Below, piece after piece: positions 1 through 61,990 of a stretch of DNA of 64,000 nucleotides. The DNA is from Zygnema circumcarinatum SAG 698-1b. Taxonomy: Eukaryota > Plantae > Zygnematophyceae. The stretch spans positions 4,497,361 to 4,561,360 of the forward strand of contig CM074805.1 in the NCBI GenBank assembly GCA_037447605.1. Reading direction: 5' to 3'. The notes beneath the pieces were generated by a model, which was not told where the DNA came from, made no database searches, and saw nothing but the letters and a program-made list of their open reading frames with translations. Numbering within the stretch: the first letter of the stretch is position 1; each line of letters starts with the position of its first letter. The translations under genes were made by a program, and so were the position numbers.

Positions 1-102
1 CCAGGACGGAACAATTTTTTGGCATTTTCTTGCAAAACACATGGGATATATAGCTTTGCGGTGTAGAGGGCTTTTCTTAGCAATCATATCGGGAAAATGC
101 AG

Positions 103-1741
103 GTGGGGTTTATGCCCAAGGAGGATATGACGCTGGAAACGGAGTGAACTACTACAATCTGCCTGGATCAAGGACAGCGAACTTAGCGAACCTGCAATAC
201 ACATCGAATGTGAACATTCCCGGAAAGTGGTGCTTCAAACTTTCCACATCAGGTGACGAGAACAACCTGAATAGAACAACCTGAATATGAGTCGCCTTTG
301 CAGGTTAAATATTTATCCTTAAGTCTGCTTTTTGGGAAGCAGTCACTATTTGAAGTCTGTCCGAATCAATCAAACGTTGGTTTGTGATCTTATCCTTTTG
401 CAGTTGTTTCCCCGTCTCCTTCACCACCACCATCATCACCACCACGATCGCCACCATCACCACCACCATCATCACCACCACCATCGCCACCATCACCACC
501 ACCATCATCCACCATCACCACCACCCACCACCACCATCACCACCACCACCACCACCATCACCACCACCACCATCACCACCACCATCACCACCATCACCAC
601 CACCACCATCACCACCACCATCACCACCATCACCACCACCACCACCACCCACCATCACCACCACCATCACCACCACCACCATCACCACCACCATTGCCAC
701 CATCACCACCACCACCATCACCACCACCATTGCCACCATCACCACCACCATCACCACCACCACCACCACCACCACCATCATCACCACCACCACCATCGCC
801 ACCACCACCATCACCACCACCACCATCACCACCACCACCACCATCACCACCACCATTTTCACCACCACCATTATCACCATCACCACCACCATCATCACCT
901 CCACCATCGCCACCAGCACCAACTCCTCCTCGTCTTCCTCCGCCTCCTCGTTCTCCTCATCCTCCTCGATCTCCACCTCCTCCTCCTCGATCTCCACCTC
1001 CGCCTCCTCGATCTCCACCTCCTCCTCGTCCTCTCCCTCCTCCTCCTCGATCTCCACCTCCTCCTCGTCCTCTCCCTCCTCCTCCTCGATCTCCACCTCC
1101 TCCTCGTCCTCTCCCTCCTCCTCCTCTGTCTCCACCTCCTCCTCGTCCTCTCCCTCCTCCTCCTCGATCTCCACCTCCTCCTCGTCCTCTCCCTCCTCCT
1201 CCTCGGTCTCCACCTCCTCCTCGTCCACTCCCACCTCCTCCTCGGTCTCCACCTCCTCCTCGTCCTGTCCCTCCCCCTCCTCGGTCCCCACCTCCTCCTC
1301 GTCCTCTCCCTCCTCCTCCTCGATCTCCACCTCCACTTCCTCCTCCTCGAAGTCCGCCTCGAAGCCCCCCCCCTCCAAGGTCACCTCCATTCCGACCTCC
1401 ACCTCCATCTCCGCCTCCATCTCCACCTCCACCTCCATCTCCATCTCCTCCTCCATCTCCACCTCCACCTTCACCTCCATCTCCATCTCCGCCTCCATCT
1501 CCACCTCCACCTTCACCTCCATCGCCATCTCCTCAAGCTCAACCAGGTTAGTTCATGCCTCAGCTCCATCACACCACATGCTATCTTCTAGACAAGGCCA
1601 AACCTACTCAAACTAGTGATGGTGAGCATGTAAGTTTCTACATGTACGGTGGAAATCGTCTTCGTGGCTTTGCCTGCTTTGAAGAACATACTTGTCATTG
1701 GATGTGCAGAGTGATGCGCAACAGCCGGAAACTTCAAACTA
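103..1741 (+). CDS. 5'-truncated multi-exon gene: C-terminal half of a NIDO (nidogen/tectorin-like) domain followed by a ~380-aa extensin-like Ser-Pro(n) region; likely secreted cell-wall glycoprotein
   Basis: Exon 103-252 (ag|...|gt, phase 1 both sides) reads GGVYAQGGYDAGNGVNYYNLPGSRTANLANLQYTSNVNIPGKWCFKLSTS, matching the NIDO C-terminal pattern AQxGxxxG..N...LPGSRT...N...T.NVN.PG.W.F. Exon 404-1546 in the matching phase encodes SPPPP and RSPPPPRPLPPPP repeats (includes ORF 694-1551). A short exon near 1591-1621 and a terminal exon near 1711-1741 are tentative, so the end is approximate. Confidence 0.8.
420..1530. repeat. (CCA/CAC)n then (CCT/CTC)n low-complexity coding repeat underlying the Pro-rich exon
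   Basis: Directly visible trinucleotide-like repeats; they generate the His-, Thr/Ser- and Glu/Val-rich ORFs in the other frames. Confidence 0.95.
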
Positions 1742-2480: not shown

Positions 2481-3073
2481 CTGAGAAGGATAACGAGAAT
2501 GAAAATATTGAATGGATTAAGAAGTTTCAATGTTAAATTTCAGGGTAAAGAAAGCGCTGTGTTTCCATGGACAAATCCTTATCGTTTTCAGGACATCCTT
2601 CTGATGTCTTCACTCTATGCCCTAACCACAGTGATAGTGGCGATACTCGGATGGGAAGGGCGATTTTTGCACCATTTTTGCTCTGTTTCATTCTGTCTCA
2701 CGTGCTGCTTCACTTTCAATTTCCTTCATACCCTTTTTTTTTTTTTTTTTTTTTTTTGAGTTGAAGGAGAGCACCAAAGCTCGCACACTTCCCTCTTTGA
2801 ACCCGAGCAGAATGTGACGACGTGTCCTCGGCTGCCACGTGGCAGGTAAGCCGTTAAAGCGCCGGCCGAGAGACGTGGCGATCTATGTTTGGCTCAGTTT
2901 AATATGTAGTTGAACGGAGTTGGCGACGACGGGGAAAACTGGAACTGAACATGGAGGTAGTTCACGACGCGGGCCGAGGCAGAGGTTACAGTGAGGCAGG
3001 AGCGAGAGGAGAGGGAAAAGGAGAGCGAGGCAGAGCATTTGTAGCTCCGTACGAGTTAGACTGCTGGGCGGAC

Positions 3074-3682
3074 ATGGCGGGTTCCTCGCAGCAGCAGCGG
3101 GCAGCCATGGCGCATGGTGAGGGGGTCGTGACTTTCAGGCTTCCTAGTGCAGCTTCCGTCAGAGCTTCCATGGATCGGCTGAACGAGCTCCTGAACGAGG
3201 CCATCGCTCTGCAGCGGCCATGGCAGGAGCTCGCCGACTTCCATCGCTTTGCTCTGCCTCCATCTCTCCCAGACGCAGGCTCACGTGTGAAGTGTAACTT
3301 GATATACTTCAGAGGGAATTACACTTTGGCCCTGCTTGCAGTCATGTTCGCCAGCCTCCTCTTCCACCCCTTCCCTGTCTTCTTCCTTGGAGTTATCGCC
3401 GCCCTATGGCTGTACATATTCCGCACGGATCCTGTGGTGGCTCTCGGGCATTCCGTAACTGGGAACACGAGGGTGCTTGCGTTGGGAGGCGTCACTGTGC
3501 TGCTCGTATTCGGGCTTTCGCTGGTGGGATCCGTCATATTGGTAGGGTTTGTAACGGGCGCCATGGCGGTACTAGCACATTCTGCAATTAGGGTTTCTGA
3601 TGACCTCGTCCTGGACGACCAGGAAGCCGCTGGATTCCTCTCTTGGCTCTCTGCTGGCGGCGTTGCACCCTTTTCTCGGTAG
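3074..3682 (+). CDS. PRA1: PRA1 (prenylated Rab acceptor 1) family protein, intronless
   Basis: ORF 2951-3682 contains RPWQELAD...F.LP...RVKCNLIYFRGNY..LLFHP and two long hydrophobic hairpins typical of PRA1. The ATG at 3074 gives a length (202 aa) comparable to the paralogue; the ATG at 2951 is an alternative start. Confidence 0.9.
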   Translation: MAGSSQQQRAAMAHGEGVVTFRLPSAASVRASMDRLNELLNEAIALQRPWQELADFHRFALPPSLPDAGSRVKCNLIYFRGNYTLALLAVMFASLLFHPFPVFFLGVIAALWLYIFRTDPVVALGHSVTGNTRVLALGGVTVLLVFGLSLVGSVILVGFVTGAMAVLAHSAIRVSDDLVLDDQEAAGFLSWLSAGGVAPFSR

Positions 3683-4872: not shown

Positions 4873-5505
4873 TCATACGCGCCCCAGGCCCAATGCAGGC
4901 TGTGGACTAGAACTGAGCCACGAGAGGAACCCTGAAGCATCTCCATCGTCCAGAACGGAGTCGTCAGGAACCTTAACTGCGGCATGTGCCGCCACCACTG
5001 CAGATCCTATTACGAGGGCCTCCAATAGGACGGATCCCACAAGAGTGAGCCCAAATGTGAACAATAAAGTGACGCCTCCGAGGGCAAACACCTTCTCCTG
5101 CTCGGTTAGGGTCCGGTTCATGATGATCACCGGCTCTGCGCGGACCATGAAGACATAGATCCACATCATGGCTATCATGGCGACGAAGAGGATGGAGAGA
5201 GGATGCAAGATGAGGCTGATCAACACCCCTGCAAGCAAGACCGCTGCGTAGTTTCCCCGAAAGTACACTACGTTTTTCTTCATACGTGCAAATGCTCCTT
5301 GAAGATTGCTCGGAAAGGCAAGCGACTGGCGATCTGCAAACTCGGGCCATGGTCGCTGGAGTGCCAGCGCCTCCTTCACGGAAACTGTTGCATTCCCTAA
5401 GAAAGCTCTTGCAGCAGCAGCAGATGGAGCACCTCCTGCTGGAACACCCTCCGTTTGTAAGGCCTCCATGGCTGTCTGCGTGGAACGACTACTGGCGACG
5501 GCCAT
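4873..5505 (-). CDS. PRA1: PRA1 family protein, intronless paralogue
   Basis: 210-aa ORF with QRPWPEFAD...LAFP...RMKKNVVYFRGNY...LILHP...AAHAAVK.PDD; aligns by eye along its length with the 3074-3682 protein. Confidence 0.92.
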   Translation of the reverse strand: MAVASSRSTQTAMEALQTEGVPAGGAPSAAAARAFLGNATVSVKEALALQRPWPEFADRQSLAFPSNLQGAFARMKKNVVYFRGNYAAVLLAGVLISLILHPLSILFVAMIAMMWIYVFMVRAEPVIIMNRTLTEQEKVFALGGVTLLFTFGLTLVGSVLLEALVIGSAVVAAHAAVKVPDDSVLDDGDASGFLSWLSSSPQPALGLGRV

Positions 5506-34149: not shown

Positions 34150-36773
34150 CTAATTTGCAACCCCCACATTGTTTGCACTCTGCCCAAGGCCAGCTGCCGC
34201 CTCCAGACGCTTCCACGTGGCCTCGCGATTCTCCTCAATTCCCTGCGCTCTCGCCTCCTCGTCCAAGAACCGATGCTGACACTCCTCATAAAGGGGCTGA
34301 TCCATGTCAAGGAACATCTTGCGAACATTGATCGTGAGCCCATGAACAGCCTGCCAATACATATACACAGTATAGGAGGTTTAGGTATCACAAATAACAA
34401 CCGGGAGATCGTGAAGACGGTGAGGGGGCCATCTCACATGGTGGCAAACGACAAGATTAGAGTCAAGGAATTGGGTCTTACCTGATTCCAGTGACTGCGT
34501 GCATTGCGTTCAAGAGGACTGAATATGAGTGGAAGAATAACAGCACGGTTTTGAGCAACAAGGCTCACAATGTAGTCATTGTTCCACAAGAAAAGAGCCC
34601 TTTCTGCCACCTGCATCTCAACAGTTTGCAGGATTAAGAGAGAGTGACCTTGAGTAGGACTCACACACCACCAAGCTGACCAGCAGCAGCTCTCGCCTGC
34701 TTGTCCCTTAACTATTTAAACAAATATGTCGAGTGAAACAGAGAAATGGGGGAGGTGGGGGAAGAAAGAGAGAGAGGGAGAAAGAGGGAGAGAGAGTGGG
34801 AGAGGAGGTAACCTTGAATATCTGCAATACATATGTCGAAAAGCAAGTGCTTGCCTATCAACTTATAAATTACCAAGGATCCTTCTAAATGACACTGCTG
34901 CACCTGCTATCCAGAAAAATATGCACGTTGAGCTCGAACCCTATTCAACTACCTGCAATGAACAGGTTCATCCGTCCCAGCAAAGCCTTGTGTATTACTG
35001 CTCTATCAGACGTATCTTGCACTATCACATGCTCTGTATGGAGAATTGCATCATGCATACCAAGAAGACGAATTGAAAAATCAGTTCTGCCAGTAGGTTC
35101 CAACCCTAAGAAACTCAGTTTGACAGTTTCGGTAGTCCTAAAAAATGATGAAGAACTTTGTAACTCAATGCACATATATCAAAAATGGAATCAAAAGTTT
35201 AGCTGCCTCAACAATGATGTGAAGGATAAATCAACTGCCTAGCCCGCGGAAGCATGCGCTGCCCTTCTCCTAGTCAATGCCAACAAGCAGAGCAGTGCTG
35301 CAACTGCTTACCGAGCAGAAGCAGGTTCTATCACTGTTCTCCCTATGGTAAAAGCTAAAGCTGGAACAGGACTAGCATTTTCACTCACATTTGACATACC
35401 TTGTAAGTGGGACACAACACATTGAAGGGCAACTAAAAAAAGAATATTCTAAAGTGATCCCATGCTACATATATGTCGATAGGAGACGAGCATACCTGAA
35501 AGTGAGAGCTGTTGAGACAGCGACCAATCTGGCGGAACAGCGGGCCCATAACTTGCTGAAACTCGGTTGCCTGCGTGAGCTCAAGGATCTCCTCCAATTC
35601 GCCCAAAAACAGAACCTCCTTCTGACTGTTTGTAACTGGCCAATACTTGAGCAGGCCCCTGATGACAATGTCTGCAAGCTTCGTATCCTTTTCGACAAAC
35701 TGCGTTATGCAATAAGAAAGCTGTTGATGGTACATAGAGACGCACTTCGGCTTGTGCAAGGGAATCAAAGCTCTATTGAGAAACAACTTGTGCTCTTCCT
35801 TCAGAGGAAGGGCGAACCCGTTAATAATGCTACCAAGGATCTCCAGCAATTCCGCAATTCCGTTGTGCCGCTCTGTCTCAAAGATGAAGCGATAAAAGAT
35901 ATTGTTGATAGCTTTGCGAATGAAAGGCCGGTGTACCATGAATTTTCCATAGATTCGGTGAAGAATGGTCTTCAAGTAGTCTCTCTCTCGCGGGTCTTCT
36001 GAATCAAAGAGGTCAAGCAGTCTCAGTACAAAGCTTTGGTCAATGTACTTCTTGGCAACCTTGGCATCCGTCTCATTTGAGACAACGTATCGCAGGAGGA
36101 ACTCATAGACAATCTGCAGGTGCGGCCAGGCCGGCTCCATTGTGGGTTCCTCCTCTTCTGGATCAAAGGAATCTGTGGCGGAGTTTTCATGCGACGAGGG
36201 CGGCAAGCTGCGGAACAGATTGGCCACCAGCATCTTTGTAATGTCCTCGAATACTGCTTCATTGAATTTCCCTGTCCCTGAGGCCACATAATCCACTAAC
36301 TCCAGCAATGTCTGCCTCTTAATTTCTTTCTCCCTCACGTTTTTCGCCTGGTCGGTGAAGTCAAATGTGTAGGTGCAAAGGTTTAGCTTCCTAATGAACA
36401 GATTCTGCCTTTCTTGGCTCGACACTTCTCGGAAAGATAGTAATGGCTCTGCAAACATGGCTGCTTCACTATTCATTCCCGCAACCGCCAATCCCGCATC
36501 CTTCCCCGGCCCTCCCACTGCTCCCACTCCTCCTACCCCTCCCACTCCCGCCCCGCTTCCTCCTACCCCTCCTGCTGCTGCCGGCCTAGCTGTCGCCGGC
36601 AAAACCGGCGCCACTGCACCCTTATGTGCATTGTTGGCGCCTGCAGGGGCCTTCCCTGAAGCCGTCCCTCTGCCTGAGCTCTTCCCCGCCCCGGCTGAGC
36701 CAGCCGCCTGCTCCGTCGACGCATCCGACTTCTTCCTCCCTCCTCCCAACCTGTTCCTCACGTTCTGGAGCAT
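34150..36773 (-). CDS. Protein phosphatase 2A regulatory subunit B' (B56)
   Basis: Exons 36773-35496, 34610-34482 and 34350-34150. Canonical B56 sequence: [62 protein letters not shown]|[15 protein letters not shown]|AVHGLT. The likely start is MLQNVRNRL at 36773. Confidence 0.96.
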
Positions 36774-37942
36774 GCCGAGATGCCCACTGCCGCCCCTCCC
36801 TTCTACCTGCGCATGCGCTCTTCTCTCCCCCTCCCTCTCCCTCTCCCTCCTTTTCTCCCCCTCTCTCTCTCTTGTCACCCCTCCCTCCCCTTTCTATCCC
36901 TCTCTCTCGCTCTCTCTCCCCCCTACCACGCGCTCCCCATGGCTCCCCCCCTGGTAACCCTAACGGCGCAAGCTATGGCAGAGGCAGGTCGTCCCGCCAA
37001 CCCAGCCCAACCCAACCCAACCCTAGCCAGCCGGCCAGCCAGCCAACGTCCCTGCCTCCCTCCCTCTCTCCCTCGCCCCGGCCCTTCGCAGGCAGGTCTC
37101 CATGGGTCCGTACCGTACGGCGGGCGCAGCTGGCACACGGAACTACATCACAGTTCCGTTCAGAAAGTACGGCGGTTCGCAAATGTTGCACGGGAACGCA
37201 GCCACATGCAACTAGCAGTGGTTCTAGGGCGTGAGGGGTGCGCGTAGCGTGCTGTAATTGCTTGCTGGAAACGTGGAGGGGGAAGATGTAGAATTGAAAA
37301 CTTGGAAAGCATTTTGGAGTGGGATGAAGGGCATGAATTTGTGGTCGTAGATGGTGGTTTTAGGGTTAAGGGCACATGCAGTGTAAGCTATCACGATGTG
37401 CATAACCATGTGTATGTTGCCATGATGTATGGAGATGTTCTTACAACGATGCTTGATGTAAAAGGGGGATAACATGGCGATGATTTTCATGAAGACGTTG
37501 TCAATGACCTCGACAATGCATGTGTGCATGACCGCGCGGCTGACATGACCTGTGATGTGACTGATGTCACTGATGTGCATGCTATTCATGGTCATGGTGC
37601 GCATGTTTGACAATATACCGCATACCGTACAGTGAGACGTACCGTACGGTAAGGTACGAATAAACCTGTTCTACCGGACCAGTAGAGATGTAAGAAAAAA
37701 TAACAAAACTGCCCACACAGATTTCTGAGAACTGAGACCTCGGCAGATGTGCATCCAGATTCACCGTTACTTTAGGGGTGATGCGATCGCTATCGGGAAA
37801 GTCGAATGAAGGCATTTGGTGCTCGAATGCCGGTCGGCGCGGGGCCTTTCTTTGGTCAGCGCCCTGCTGAAGTAACGTGCTCATAAAATGTCAAGGGCAA
37901 GTCGCCGACAGCCAGACGGTGCGATCTGTGGCCTGTCAGGAC

Positions 37943-44801: not shown

Positions 44802-47800
44802 TTCCCCCTCTTTGGCACTTTAGTTCCTGAGAGGCCCCAGCCCAATGAGATCCGAATTAATCTCAAGGTCTCTCCACCCACTTACATTTTGCGCCTTAAG
44901 TCCCGACATATCGGTACACTTGCCTGCTCCACGGTTCCAATGAACTTGATCTTGCAATGAGTCCCTCTCACCTCTGTCTCAGCGTAATGGTATTGGATCA
45001 GAATGCTTGTAAAACGTGGAACACGGATTCTCCATGAGCAATAGTTGATTGTCTGCAGTGGTAAGGGGAGTTGGTAAGCTCACACTCCCCAAAGAAGTTC
45101 CTTGACACACTCCACTGGTGCATGGCAAATTTGCCATATCTTTACCTTGATGCTGGAGAGCCAGCGAAGGCCTGGGTGGGCCATGTGATGGCCCCACACG
45201 CATTCAAAACATTAATCAGATGTGGGCGGGATGAATCCAAATCCCCTCGGTCGACGTCTGTATAGCCATAGACTTCATTTTGCGAGTCCCCTCTGGCACG
45301 GTGCAATCAGTTCCCTTGAGAAACCGAAATATAAACGGCTCCTTCCCAATGCTCCTGCTTGGGGTTCTCCATGAATGCAACTGGGTGCTCCGCGTACACC
45401 ATGGAGTCGGGGCACCAGTGCGTCATCAAATACATGAGGCTCCCAATCGCAGATCGATATGGCACTCCTGCCATTGCCTTTGCCTCCTCCTCTGTAGACG
45501 GGGACATCTCCTTCGTGAAGCGAACTCGACCTCCATGGGACTTGTCGCGTAGCTTGCAAACCCAGCATGTTGAACCAGCCAGCCATCTACTGCATACTTC
45601 CTTTGACAAAGGAATAGCGAACCATCAGCCCCTCTTACATTTGGATCCCAAGAATCTTGGAGCTTCTCAAGATCGATCATGGAAATTCTCACTAGAGCTC
45701 CTTCTTCTGCAATCTTTGAAGAGACTTGCTTGATCATGGTCGAGGTCATCCACATAGACCCCAACAAACAACTTATCATCATCTTAAGCGAATTACGCTG
45801 GAAGTGTCGGTCTCAAAGCGATCAAACCCGCCCAGCCTGTAAAGAGTTCATCGATCTTCTCATACCACCGCAGTTTTGCCCCGGCCATACAAACTCTTAG
45901 CGATGCGCACCGCAGGTTCTCCTTTCCCGCTACCGCGCCCTCTCAGAACGCTCCGCGTATATCTCTTCATCAAGATCTCCATACAAAAGCTGATCTTGAT
46001 GTCAAGCTGAGTGGACATGCATCCCCTCTCACGGTACAGTAGAAATGAGGGGCGGAGGGGAGTTGAACTTCACAGCGGGGGCAAAGGTCTACGTGTAGTC
46101 AATCCCCTCCTTCTGACTGTAGCCCTTGGCCACAAGTCGCGCCTTGTACCTATCGATGCTGCCGTCCGCCTTCCTCTTAACCTTGAAGACCCATTTGCAG
46201 CCGATGGCACGCCTCCCAGGTGGGAGCTTCTCCAAGCGCCAAGTCTGATTCTCAATCAGACTGTTCCACTCACTATCAATGGCCTCCTGCCACTTGATCT
46301 GATCTGGCCCCACAACAGCTTCCCCGTAAGTCTGAGGCTCAACANNNTNNGNCANNNNACANNGGGCAATCNTGTCNNTGTCACCTGAGAATGATNCAGA
46401 ATGATCCTGGGCATTCTTTCGTGCTTTCTTCCGCATGCGCTTCGTAGGCACAGCCGGACTGAAACGATTTGGAGGCCGCCTGGTCCTCCCACTTGTCTTC
46501 TCCATCACGGAGAGATGCTCTTGAGGCTGCTCTACAACTCGCATTGGAGCTGGTGCATCCTCCTTTGGCTCAACAGCCATCTCCTCCAGCAACTCTTCAT
46601 TCGCCGCTGCACGTGGTTCTGAAGCCACCAACTTATGCGGCATGCTGGCTGCCTCCTCTCGTGAACTGGAGGTCTCCTCCTGAGACTTCGTAGCTGATGC
46701 CTCCTTCGATGGTCCCACGGACTCCTGCATGTCTCCCCAATGTGGAGAACCCAAGGGAGTAAAGGTCACCGGTTTTGTCTCATCATCACTCTCTGACTCT
46801 ACAGGCCGTCGTGAATGAATGGGCGTGGCACTCTCCTCCGTCTGAGCTTGAGTGGCCACTGGCACCTTCTCCTGCTCAGGGTGACTCACAATCACTTCAC
46901 CTTCATAGGTGAATCGAGTGGAACCGCGACTCGCTCCCGTACGCCTCCATGAGTGGGTAAAGGGGACGTGTGCAGCATCCTCATCCACCCTCACGTCCCT
47001 GCTGATCTCTACCTTCTTGGTCTCAAGGCTATACACCCTGTAAGCCCTGCAATCACTGGCGTATCCAAGAAAGAAGCCCTCCTTGCCCCTTGGGAAAAAC
47101 TTCCCTCCACCTTGGCGACCTTGATTGCTCGCATACCAACACTGATCAAATGCTTTCCAAGTGTCCCGGTGGGCCGTCCCCTCCACACCTCATCCCGGGC
47201 ACTTTCGATCCTCGGGCCGATGGCAGACACATTCTCACATGAGGTCATCCTTCTCCCCAAAATATCCCGCAGGAAATGGTGAGTCATGCAACATCGTCCT
47301 TGCCATGTCTCCAAGAGTCTTGTTCACTCTCTCTGCAGCTCCATTACTCTGCGGTGAGTATGCAGCAGAGAACTCCTGCTTGATTCCCAAGCCTCTCAAA
47401 TACTCACTGAACACCTTGTTCTTGAATTCTCCTCCATTGTCTGAACGGAGGTTCTTGAGTAGATGGCCGCTCTCCCGCTCTGCACGCATCTTCCAAACTC
47501 TGAAAATTTGGATAGCGTCGGACCGTATCCAGAGCACCACCCAAATCTTTAGGTAATTAGTCATCAAGAGAAGTGATGAAATATCGACTTCCTTCAAGCC
47601 ATTTGGTGATGGGGCCACCTGAAGTGCAGTATTGCTGGCATACTTGGCTCCTTGGTAGCGCCCTCTCCATCTCCTCTTAGCGAATGGCCCACGATGGATC
47701 TTCCCTTTAATGCGGTCTTATGCAAATCCTCGTGGATCGACCGCACCCTCAGTCAAACCTTGGACCAGCCCCTTCGAGCTAACTCCCGCATGGCTCGAAA

Positions 47801-51774: not shown

Positions 51775-52952
51775 TGTAGCGTAGTGGAGCTGCGCTCAAC
51801 GGATCCGCGTCAGTTCAGTTGTACTTGATGTATGCCTCTTCAGTGTCACGGATCAGCAGAATCCAGGAGCTGCCAACGGAGGATGCGAGAAGGCAGTGCC
51901 ATGTGTTGGCGGCCCACGGAACAGCACATCATCNNNNNNNNNNCCGTCACTCTCTCCCTTACTCTGTTCACTCTGACAATGGCTCAGAATACAAGGGGGC
52001 GTTTGCCGAGCTCATGCAAGACTTTCGCATCCATCACCGCACCTCTAGCCCCTACTCCCCCTGGCAGAATGGGCTTGCAGAACGTACCATACAGACCGTC
52101 AAAGACGCGTGCGTTCGCGGCTGCGCGGAGCTGGAGGCGGACAGGCGCGAGGTCGTTCCCTCCCTCTTCTTCACTTACAACACGTCTGTTCACTCCTCCA
52201 CTAGCTTCTCTCCCTACGAGCTCCTCTATGGACGTAAGCCCCGCATTCCCCTTGACCTCCTCTCTGCTGAACCCCTCTTTTACGATGATGCGCCTCCCCT
52301 GGATCGGGTAGCGCAGCTTCAGCTCTTGGCCCTACGCTTCCAAACCCTAGATTCCATGGCCTCCCATCAACTCGAACGCGCGCACAGACGCCAACTCACC
52401 GACTTTGGGAGGCGCCGACGCGCTGCTCTCCCGCCCAATCAGGTCGCGCCACGTCAGCTTGTTTGGCTCAGGAATCTCGCCAAACCGACTCAACGGGCCT
52501 TTCCTTGGTTGGGCCCTTTCATCTGTGTCGGTCCGTCCGACATTCCGGGCTGGGCCATCATTTCGGAAGGCCCTGACTCTAGTGGGAACGCCCGGCGCTG
52601 GCGTTCCCACTGGATCGACATTCGTGCCGCCACGTCAGCTGTTCCTCCCCCCCGCGATGGCTGACCGTTTGCGACCGACAGCGCGATCTCCTCCGTACCC
52701 CCCCTGCCATGACGACTCCTTATTGGTCCATTTCTACTTCCCGCCACTTTTTGCCACTTCGCCAACATTTCGCCAGCCGGTCGTCCCTTTCGATTNNNNN
52801 NNNNNATCCCCCGGTTCCTGGCTATATGCTGCAGGCAGACCCACAGCCCCAATCCAACCCTTCATTAGTTTCAGGACAGATGCACTAGTTGCCGTACATC
52901 ACCTTCAGCTAGACCAGCAGTCTCCTCTTAACCCCACTTATCTTGTGCTACA
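51775..52952 (+). mobile_element. Gypsy-type integrase element with TGTAGC...GCTACA termini and a 4-bp TSD (true length hidden by two gaps)
   Basis: TSD AACG at 51771-51774 and 52953-52956, recognisable by comparison with the uninterrupted hAT copy. Gaps at 51934-51943 and 52796-52805. Confidence 0.85.
51944..52664 (+). CDS. Retroviral/Gypsy-like DDE integrase, C-terminal part (rve core plus GPY/F module)
   Basis: VHSDNGSEY...SSPYSPWQNGLAERTIQTVK...SPYELLYGRKPRIPLD...PWLGPF; open frame from the gap to the stop at 52664; no chromodomain. Confidence 0.85.

Positions 52953-60486: not shown

Positions 60487-61990
<1,504 letters not shown>

Follow-up and report, generated by a model that had tools for sequence, protein, structure and literature searches.

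A NIDO-domain exon with a candidate in-phase join to a basic, tyrosine-free Ser-Pro rod in Zygnema circumcarinatum: the probable 3' end of a chimeric extensin-type gene

The window considered here is a stretch of 64,000 nucleotides from Zygnema circumcarinatum SAG 698-1b, and it opens inside an intron of a gene whose front lies upstream of the first base. The part of that gene found within the window comprises the end of a NIDO domain and a long proline-rich tract, and is followed by two PRA1-family genes and, farther along, by an open reading frame for a regulatory subunit of protein phosphatase 2A. The features of the locus are listed below, with positions counted from the first base of the window.

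1-102, forward strand: 3' end of an intron, with stops in frame at 51-53 and 78-80 and the acceptor ...aaaatgcAG at 101-102
103-252, forward strand: exon for the C-terminal end of a NIDO domain, 150 nt, phase 1 at both ends, identified by its match to Pfam PF06119
253-403, forward strand: candidate intron of 151 nt, GT...AG, with donor GTGACG at 253 and acceptor ccttttgcAG at 402-403
404-1546, forward strand: proline-rich exon for an extensin/HRGP-type rod, 1143 nt, 381 codons counting the split ones, with phase-1 boundaries on both sides provided that splicing uses the donor at 1547
511-648, forward strand: register-slipped stretch within the rod, reading TITTT plus 41 His in the frame of the gene (46 codons), recognized from translation and composition
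923-1345, forward strand: 39-nt unit encoding RSPPPPRPLPPPP, repeated in tandem (TRF period 39, 10.8 copies, 90% matches)
1547-1552, forward strand: candidate donor CAG/GTTAGT, recognized from the sequence and containing an in-frame stop, TAG, at 1549-1551
2951-3682, forward strand: PRA1-family gene (Pfam PF03208, E about 6e-36)
4873-5505, reverse strand: PRA1-family gene, tail to tail with the gene at 2951-3682 (Pfam PF03208, E about 6e-36)
35433-36878, reverse strand: open reading frame for PP2A regulatory subunit B56

The exon at 103-252 encodes the peptide quoted in the initial annotation of this DNA, and the assignment of that peptide to the NIDO family is borne out by profile comparison. 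Scanned alone, the exon matches positions 140-185 of the 186 in PF06119 with an E value of 1e-10 and a score of 42.4 bits, the curated cut-off being 25. The matched segment is the C-terminal quarter (the last 46 profile positions) of one NIDO domain, and the first codon of the exon is split by the upstream intron. Since the profile ends (185/186) three codons short of the end of the exon, the boundary of the module coincides with an intron. No further copy of the NIDO piece turned up when the 64-kb window was searched with tblastn. The initial annotation had pictured a globular NIDO head on a rod; that picture is incomplete, as the window holds only the last quarter of one NIDO domain.

The connection between the NIDO exon and the rod depends on the candidate intron at 253-403. 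Without splicing, the NIDO frame runs into a TGA at 282-284. With it, G252 and the first two bases of the next exon, T404 and T405, would form one codon in phase 1, and 380 full codons follow to position 1545 without a stop. An in-phase join between NIDO and a rod of about 380 SPPPP-type residues had been proposed earlier, and as a prediction from the DNA it is upheld in its canonical GT-AG ends, its phase and its 380 codons, but not throughout the rod, of which 46 codons (511-648) do not read as SPPPP. We infer from these signals that the intron is used, and so read NIDO and rod as parts of one protein.

Whether the proline-rich tract is coding deserves separate consideration. Over the exon at 404-1546 the base composition is strongly skewed (57% C, with G only 4.4%), and none of the three forward frames contains a stop, so that the length of the open frame is no evidence of coding. 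The initial annotation had overlooked that three frames are open. These same properties underlie an alternative in which the NIDO exon is the terminal one: translation would continue into 253-284 and end with the tail STSGDENNLNRTT at the stop directly past the NIDO exon, and 404-1546 would be 3' untranslated region or a non-coding, microsatellite-like tract. A tract of 57% C and 4% G that is open in three frames is what simple C/A/T-rich DNA would look like. However, such a tract would not account for the canonical intron ends and the in-phase join at its border, nor for three features of the repeats themselves. The periods detected by TRF within the rod (6, 12, 15, 18, 39, 42, and 117) are all multiples of three. 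Among the eight full 39-nt units, 8 of the 10 changed cells fall at codon position 3, as do five of the seven distinct variant sites (binomial P 0.045, for only seven sites). The sequence Arg-Ser-Pro-Pro, moreover, is kept at 1348-1380 across codon families, with Ser written as AGT, AGC, or TCA and Arg as CGA or AGG. The case for coding is made up of these three features, namely the repeat periods, the third-position variation and the codon-family switching within RSPP. Together they give moderate support to translation of the rod in the predicted Ser-Pro frame, and a terminal NIDO exon followed by non-coding repeats appears unlikely.

If the rod is translated, its exon may end at the candidate donor at 1547, a very good one by its sequence, or translation may stop at the TAG that lies within it. 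Phase-1 acceptors compatible with this donor lie at 1590/1591, 1709/1710, and 1711/1712, each of which would give a different tail. The short polar tail running to 1741 in the initial annotation is at odds with the splice phases: it would call for an acceptor at 1710 in phase 0, which none of the GT donors closing the proline-rich exon can provide. The downstream open reading frame at 1555-1752 contains no Pfam family. The NIDO exon and the proline-rich exon are probably the last two coding exons of the gene, possibly with more after them. Both have phase-1 boundaries (the proline-rich exon on condition that the donor at 1547 functions), and their lengths, 150 and 1143 nt, are both divisible by three. 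Phase-1 exons of a length divisible by three are characteristic of the extracellular modules that have been shuffled in animals.

The translation of 404-1546 is dominated by proline (59.7%), followed by serine (15.5%), histidine (11.1%), and arginine (6.6%). It contains 37 motifs of serine followed by three or more prolines, together with 25 Arg and 42 His, and is devoid of Tyr, Lys, Cys, Asp, and Glu. The central array repeats the 13-residue, Arg-containing unit RSPPPPRPLPPPP. A Pfam search of the rod found no family. The lack of tyrosine cross-linking motifs and the abundance of arginine remarked upon in the initial annotation are thus both confirmed, with 0 Tyr in 380 codons and 25 Arg.

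Most of the histidine is concentrated in a single stretch, 511-648, which the initial annotation had overlooked. Here a (CCA)n-TCA repeat shifts its register three times, by one base each, which is why the frame of the gene reads TITTT and 41 His; another forward frame (open reading frame 384-1616) reads SPPP repeats over the same bases. The three one-base slips sum to one codon, create no stop, and leave the Ser-Pro frame to resume after 648. Judged from the DNA, the stretch may be a real poly-His insert that arose by repeat slippage, an error of assembly, or a sign of decay. The last of these belongs to a broader alternative, in which the locus is a decaying duplicate, a pseudogene or pseudo-exon cassette, of a gene with NIDO and a proline rod, and the slips at 511-648 are its first lesions. 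The conversion of SPPP repeats into Thr, Ile, and His by three one-base shifts would fit such decay, as would the failure to find an identical or near-identical protein in the collections searched. Yet the net effect of the shifts is a single codon, after which the frame is regained without a stop, the splice sites are intact, and the repeats farther downstream are still under constraint at the level of the protein. The missing database record carries no weight in either direction: the collections searched contain no identical protein for B56 either, and an exact look-up of both PRA1 neighbours (four start/strand variants) found no identical sequence on record. As the absence extends to neighbouring housekeeping genes, it is uninformative on the gene with NIDO and rod. 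A decaying copy is accordingly improbable in our estimation, and a working gene is the reading carried forward here.

The identity of the host bears on a further concern, that the arrangement is an artefact, either of a contaminant contig or of the misassembly of low-complexity sequence beside an unrelated NIDO exon. The initial annotation had placed the gene in a streptophyte, and the B56 reading frame agrees with this placement. Its best named relatives, at about 66-87% identity, come from Chara braunii, Marchantia and other bryophytes, Closterium, Mesotaenium, and Spirogloea. Relatives of this kind make the contig that of a streptophyte, of charophyte-alga or bryophyte grade, rather than a contaminant. 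Parts of the segment 1-2400 were found in 20 public sequencing runs, 15 of which (from six studies) carry one organism label. In the Logan contigs built from such runs, the share of sampled words of 1-2400 that was present was 0.70-0.77 for the DNA-like sets and 0.32-0.47 for several smaller sets. That short-read DNA contigs contain at most 0.77 of these words, and that more than 1 kb of low-complexity repeats is hard to assemble, are points in favour of misassembly. They are outweighed by the presence of the stretch in runs of several studies under the same organism label, by neighbouring genes of streptophyte type, and by splice signals on either side of 253-403 that match each other in phase. 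An artefact is therefore very improbable, and the locus is treated below as genuine streptophyte sequence.

NIDO domains occur, so far as is known, mainly in proteins of the animal extracellular matrix. Searched against 1.84 billion representative proteins, the 49-residue NIDO piece gave 576 matches at E<=0.001, and the best-ranked matches that were scanned were NIDO proteins. The best 150 of the 576 representatives are mostly animal, among them frog and fish proteins with several NIDO domains as well as tectorin-, SNED1-, and MUC4/SUSD2-like proteins; the remainder of these 150 are metagenome fragments, some of them bacterial-looking. Identities per domain range from 40 to 61% and do not separate the groups, and 49 residues are too few for a meaningful tree. 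Among animal NIDO proteins (nidogen-1/2, alpha-tectorin, SNED1, MUC4/SUSD2, mesh, DEX-1, and the multi-NIDO proteins of frogs and fish), the C-terminal ends of the NIDO domains are 40-57% identical to the Zygnema piece. In these proteins NIDO is paired with EGF, VWD, AMOP, Sushi, fn3, ZP, or trypsin domains. None of the best 150 of the 576 representatives has a Ser-Pro rod after NIDO.

Other collections added little. No close relative of the NIDO piece was found in bacterial and archaeal genomes, the ESM Atlas gave no usable match, and a protein search with the open reading frame of the NIDO exon (range 37-117 aa) had one candidate and gave no match. Matches to sequences in the PDB were set aside as chance similarity to designed Kelch-like repeats. 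In metagenomes two loci are about 50% identical to the piece; these, JAAUXT010065506.1 and JAAUYG010206202.1, were considered as algal relatives and rejected, as their NIDO-like exons adjoin calcium-binding EGF-like exons and they are probably animal DNA.

A NIDO domain in Zygnema is in keeping with what has been reported for the genus. NIDO is among the top Pfam families that are present in filamentous Zygnema and missing from three unicellular Zygnematophyceae and from land plants (Feng et al., 2024; PMC11096116). These authors prefer loss to gain as the explanation, given that algae beyond the Phragmoplastophyta also have such families (PMC11096116). Of the two origins offered in the initial annotation, horizontal transfer or ancestral retention, this published view sides with an old presence. 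No NIDO architectures are given in that study (PMC11096116), and NIDO is not mentioned in those of its supplements that were searched. In the literature searched, streptophyte-algal NIDO was found mentioned only there (PMC11096116). The remark in the initial annotation that NIDO is not known from angiosperm wall proteins agrees with the absence from land plants reported in the same work (PMC11096116). Even animal NIDO domains have no established function (bioRxiv 10.1101/2020.07.27.223107).

The rod, for its part, can be compared with the extensins of plants. Liu et al. (2016; PMC4769139) count a protein as an extensin when SPPP occurs in it two or more times, and the 37 S-P(3+) motifs of the rod place it among extensins on this measure; the extensin-type SPn module named in the initial annotation is accordingly well founded. 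In the same study Tyr-X-Tyr is all but confined to classical extensins, the extensins of green algae are without exception chimeric, and 76% of EXTs have a signal peptide (PMC4769139). With 0 Tyr in 380 codons and a NIDO exon upstream, the predicted protein is not a classical extensin. Nor is it an LRX, since NIDO, and not LRR, immediately precedes the rod, and its resemblance to LRX is functional only. Chimeric extensins at large (LRX, PERK, formin-EXT, and "other chimeric EXTs"; PMC4769139) likewise combine a non-extensin globular domain with a Ser-Pro(3-5) block, which in LRX is C-terminal, as it is in the predicted NIDO-rod protein. Non-classical and algal extensins are also without Tyr-X-Tyr, like the Zygnema rod. 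The predicted Zygnema protein differs from chimeric extensins in its NIDO partner, in the Arg-containing 13-residue unit, in the run of 41 His, and in having no acidic residues.

A more distant likeness is offered by the volvocine algae, in which hydroxyproline-rich glycoproteins (the pherophorins and the GP1-type wall proteins) carry globular domains on long Ser/Pro rods and build the extracellular matrix. These belong to the chlorophyte lineage and have other globular domains, and they are likened to the NIDO-rod protein by description and not by sequence.

Taken together, these observations make it probable that a real streptophyte gene has its 3' end here and that its product is a secreted mosaic glycoprotein of the wall or matrix. 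This protein would be of the chimeric-extensin type, with a NIDO domain leading, through an in-phase splice, into a C-terminal basic rod. After entry into the secretory pathway, the Ser-Pro(3-5) blocks would be hydroxylated and O-arabinosylated and their serines galactosylated, as in other extensin modules, and the modified blocks would adopt the form of a stiff polyproline-II rod. By analogy with the C-terminal extensin domain of LRX, the rod may moor the N-terminal globular part, with its NIDO domain and whatever that domain might bind, in the wall or the mucilage. Lacking Tyr, it would not be retained through isodityrosine links. Ionic binding to pectin had been proposed earlier on the strength of the absent Tyr motifs and the arginine content. 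The first of these arguments falls away, as Tyr-free rods are normal for chimeric and algal extensins and the missing Tyr alone does not point to ionic binding; the second keeps some force, in that the strongly basic composition may allow it. With 25 Arg, 42 His, and zero acidic residues, the rod could conceivably be retained by electrostatic attraction to anionic pectin-like polymers, a step that we infer purely from composition.

A more elaborate scheme is also possible, although we put it forward only tentatively and think it less likely to hold than to fail. Here the full gene would encode a secreted subtilisin-type protease followed by tandem NIDO domains and the basic, Tyr-free rod, the whole being moored in the algal wall; it would form part of a lineage-specific kit of phase-1 NIDO modules shuffled onto rods, kinases, and proteases, in parallel to the matrix proteins of animals; and the run of 41 His, a product of repeat slippage, would be a genuine insert that responds to metal or pH. 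Peptidase_S8 sequence is absent from the part of the gene inside the window, and a subtilase motif occurs in 0 of the best 150 of the 576 NIDO representatives. A literature search yielded no paper in which NIDO is mentioned alongside terms for subtilases, extensins, or hydroxyproline-rich proteins.

Chimeric extensins, LRX among them, keep domains for sensing or binding fixed in the plant wall. One with a NIDO head in a streptophyte alga would, if real, add a module of animal-matrix type to this scheme. It would also place the unexplained expansion of NIDO in Zygnema (PMC11096116) in the setting of an actual protein, in a lineage near the origin of land plants, and it would provide a tractable system for asking what NIDO binds. 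Since the locus holds only the tail of the gene, its own weight in these questions is modest.

Repetitive DNA of other kinds occurs elsewhere in the window. Between 38600 and 50100 lie three tandem copies of a unit of about 5.3 kb, and neighbouring copies are 97-100% alike over the blocks sampled. Pieces of Ty1/copia elements lie inside this array (RVT_2, 46089-47186, reverse strand) and just past it (integrase, 51819-52664, forward strand). Near the far end of the window, at about 61170-61850, a (CA)n microsatellite of about 700 bases is open in all six frames, which accounts for the cluster of overlapping open reading frames at that position.
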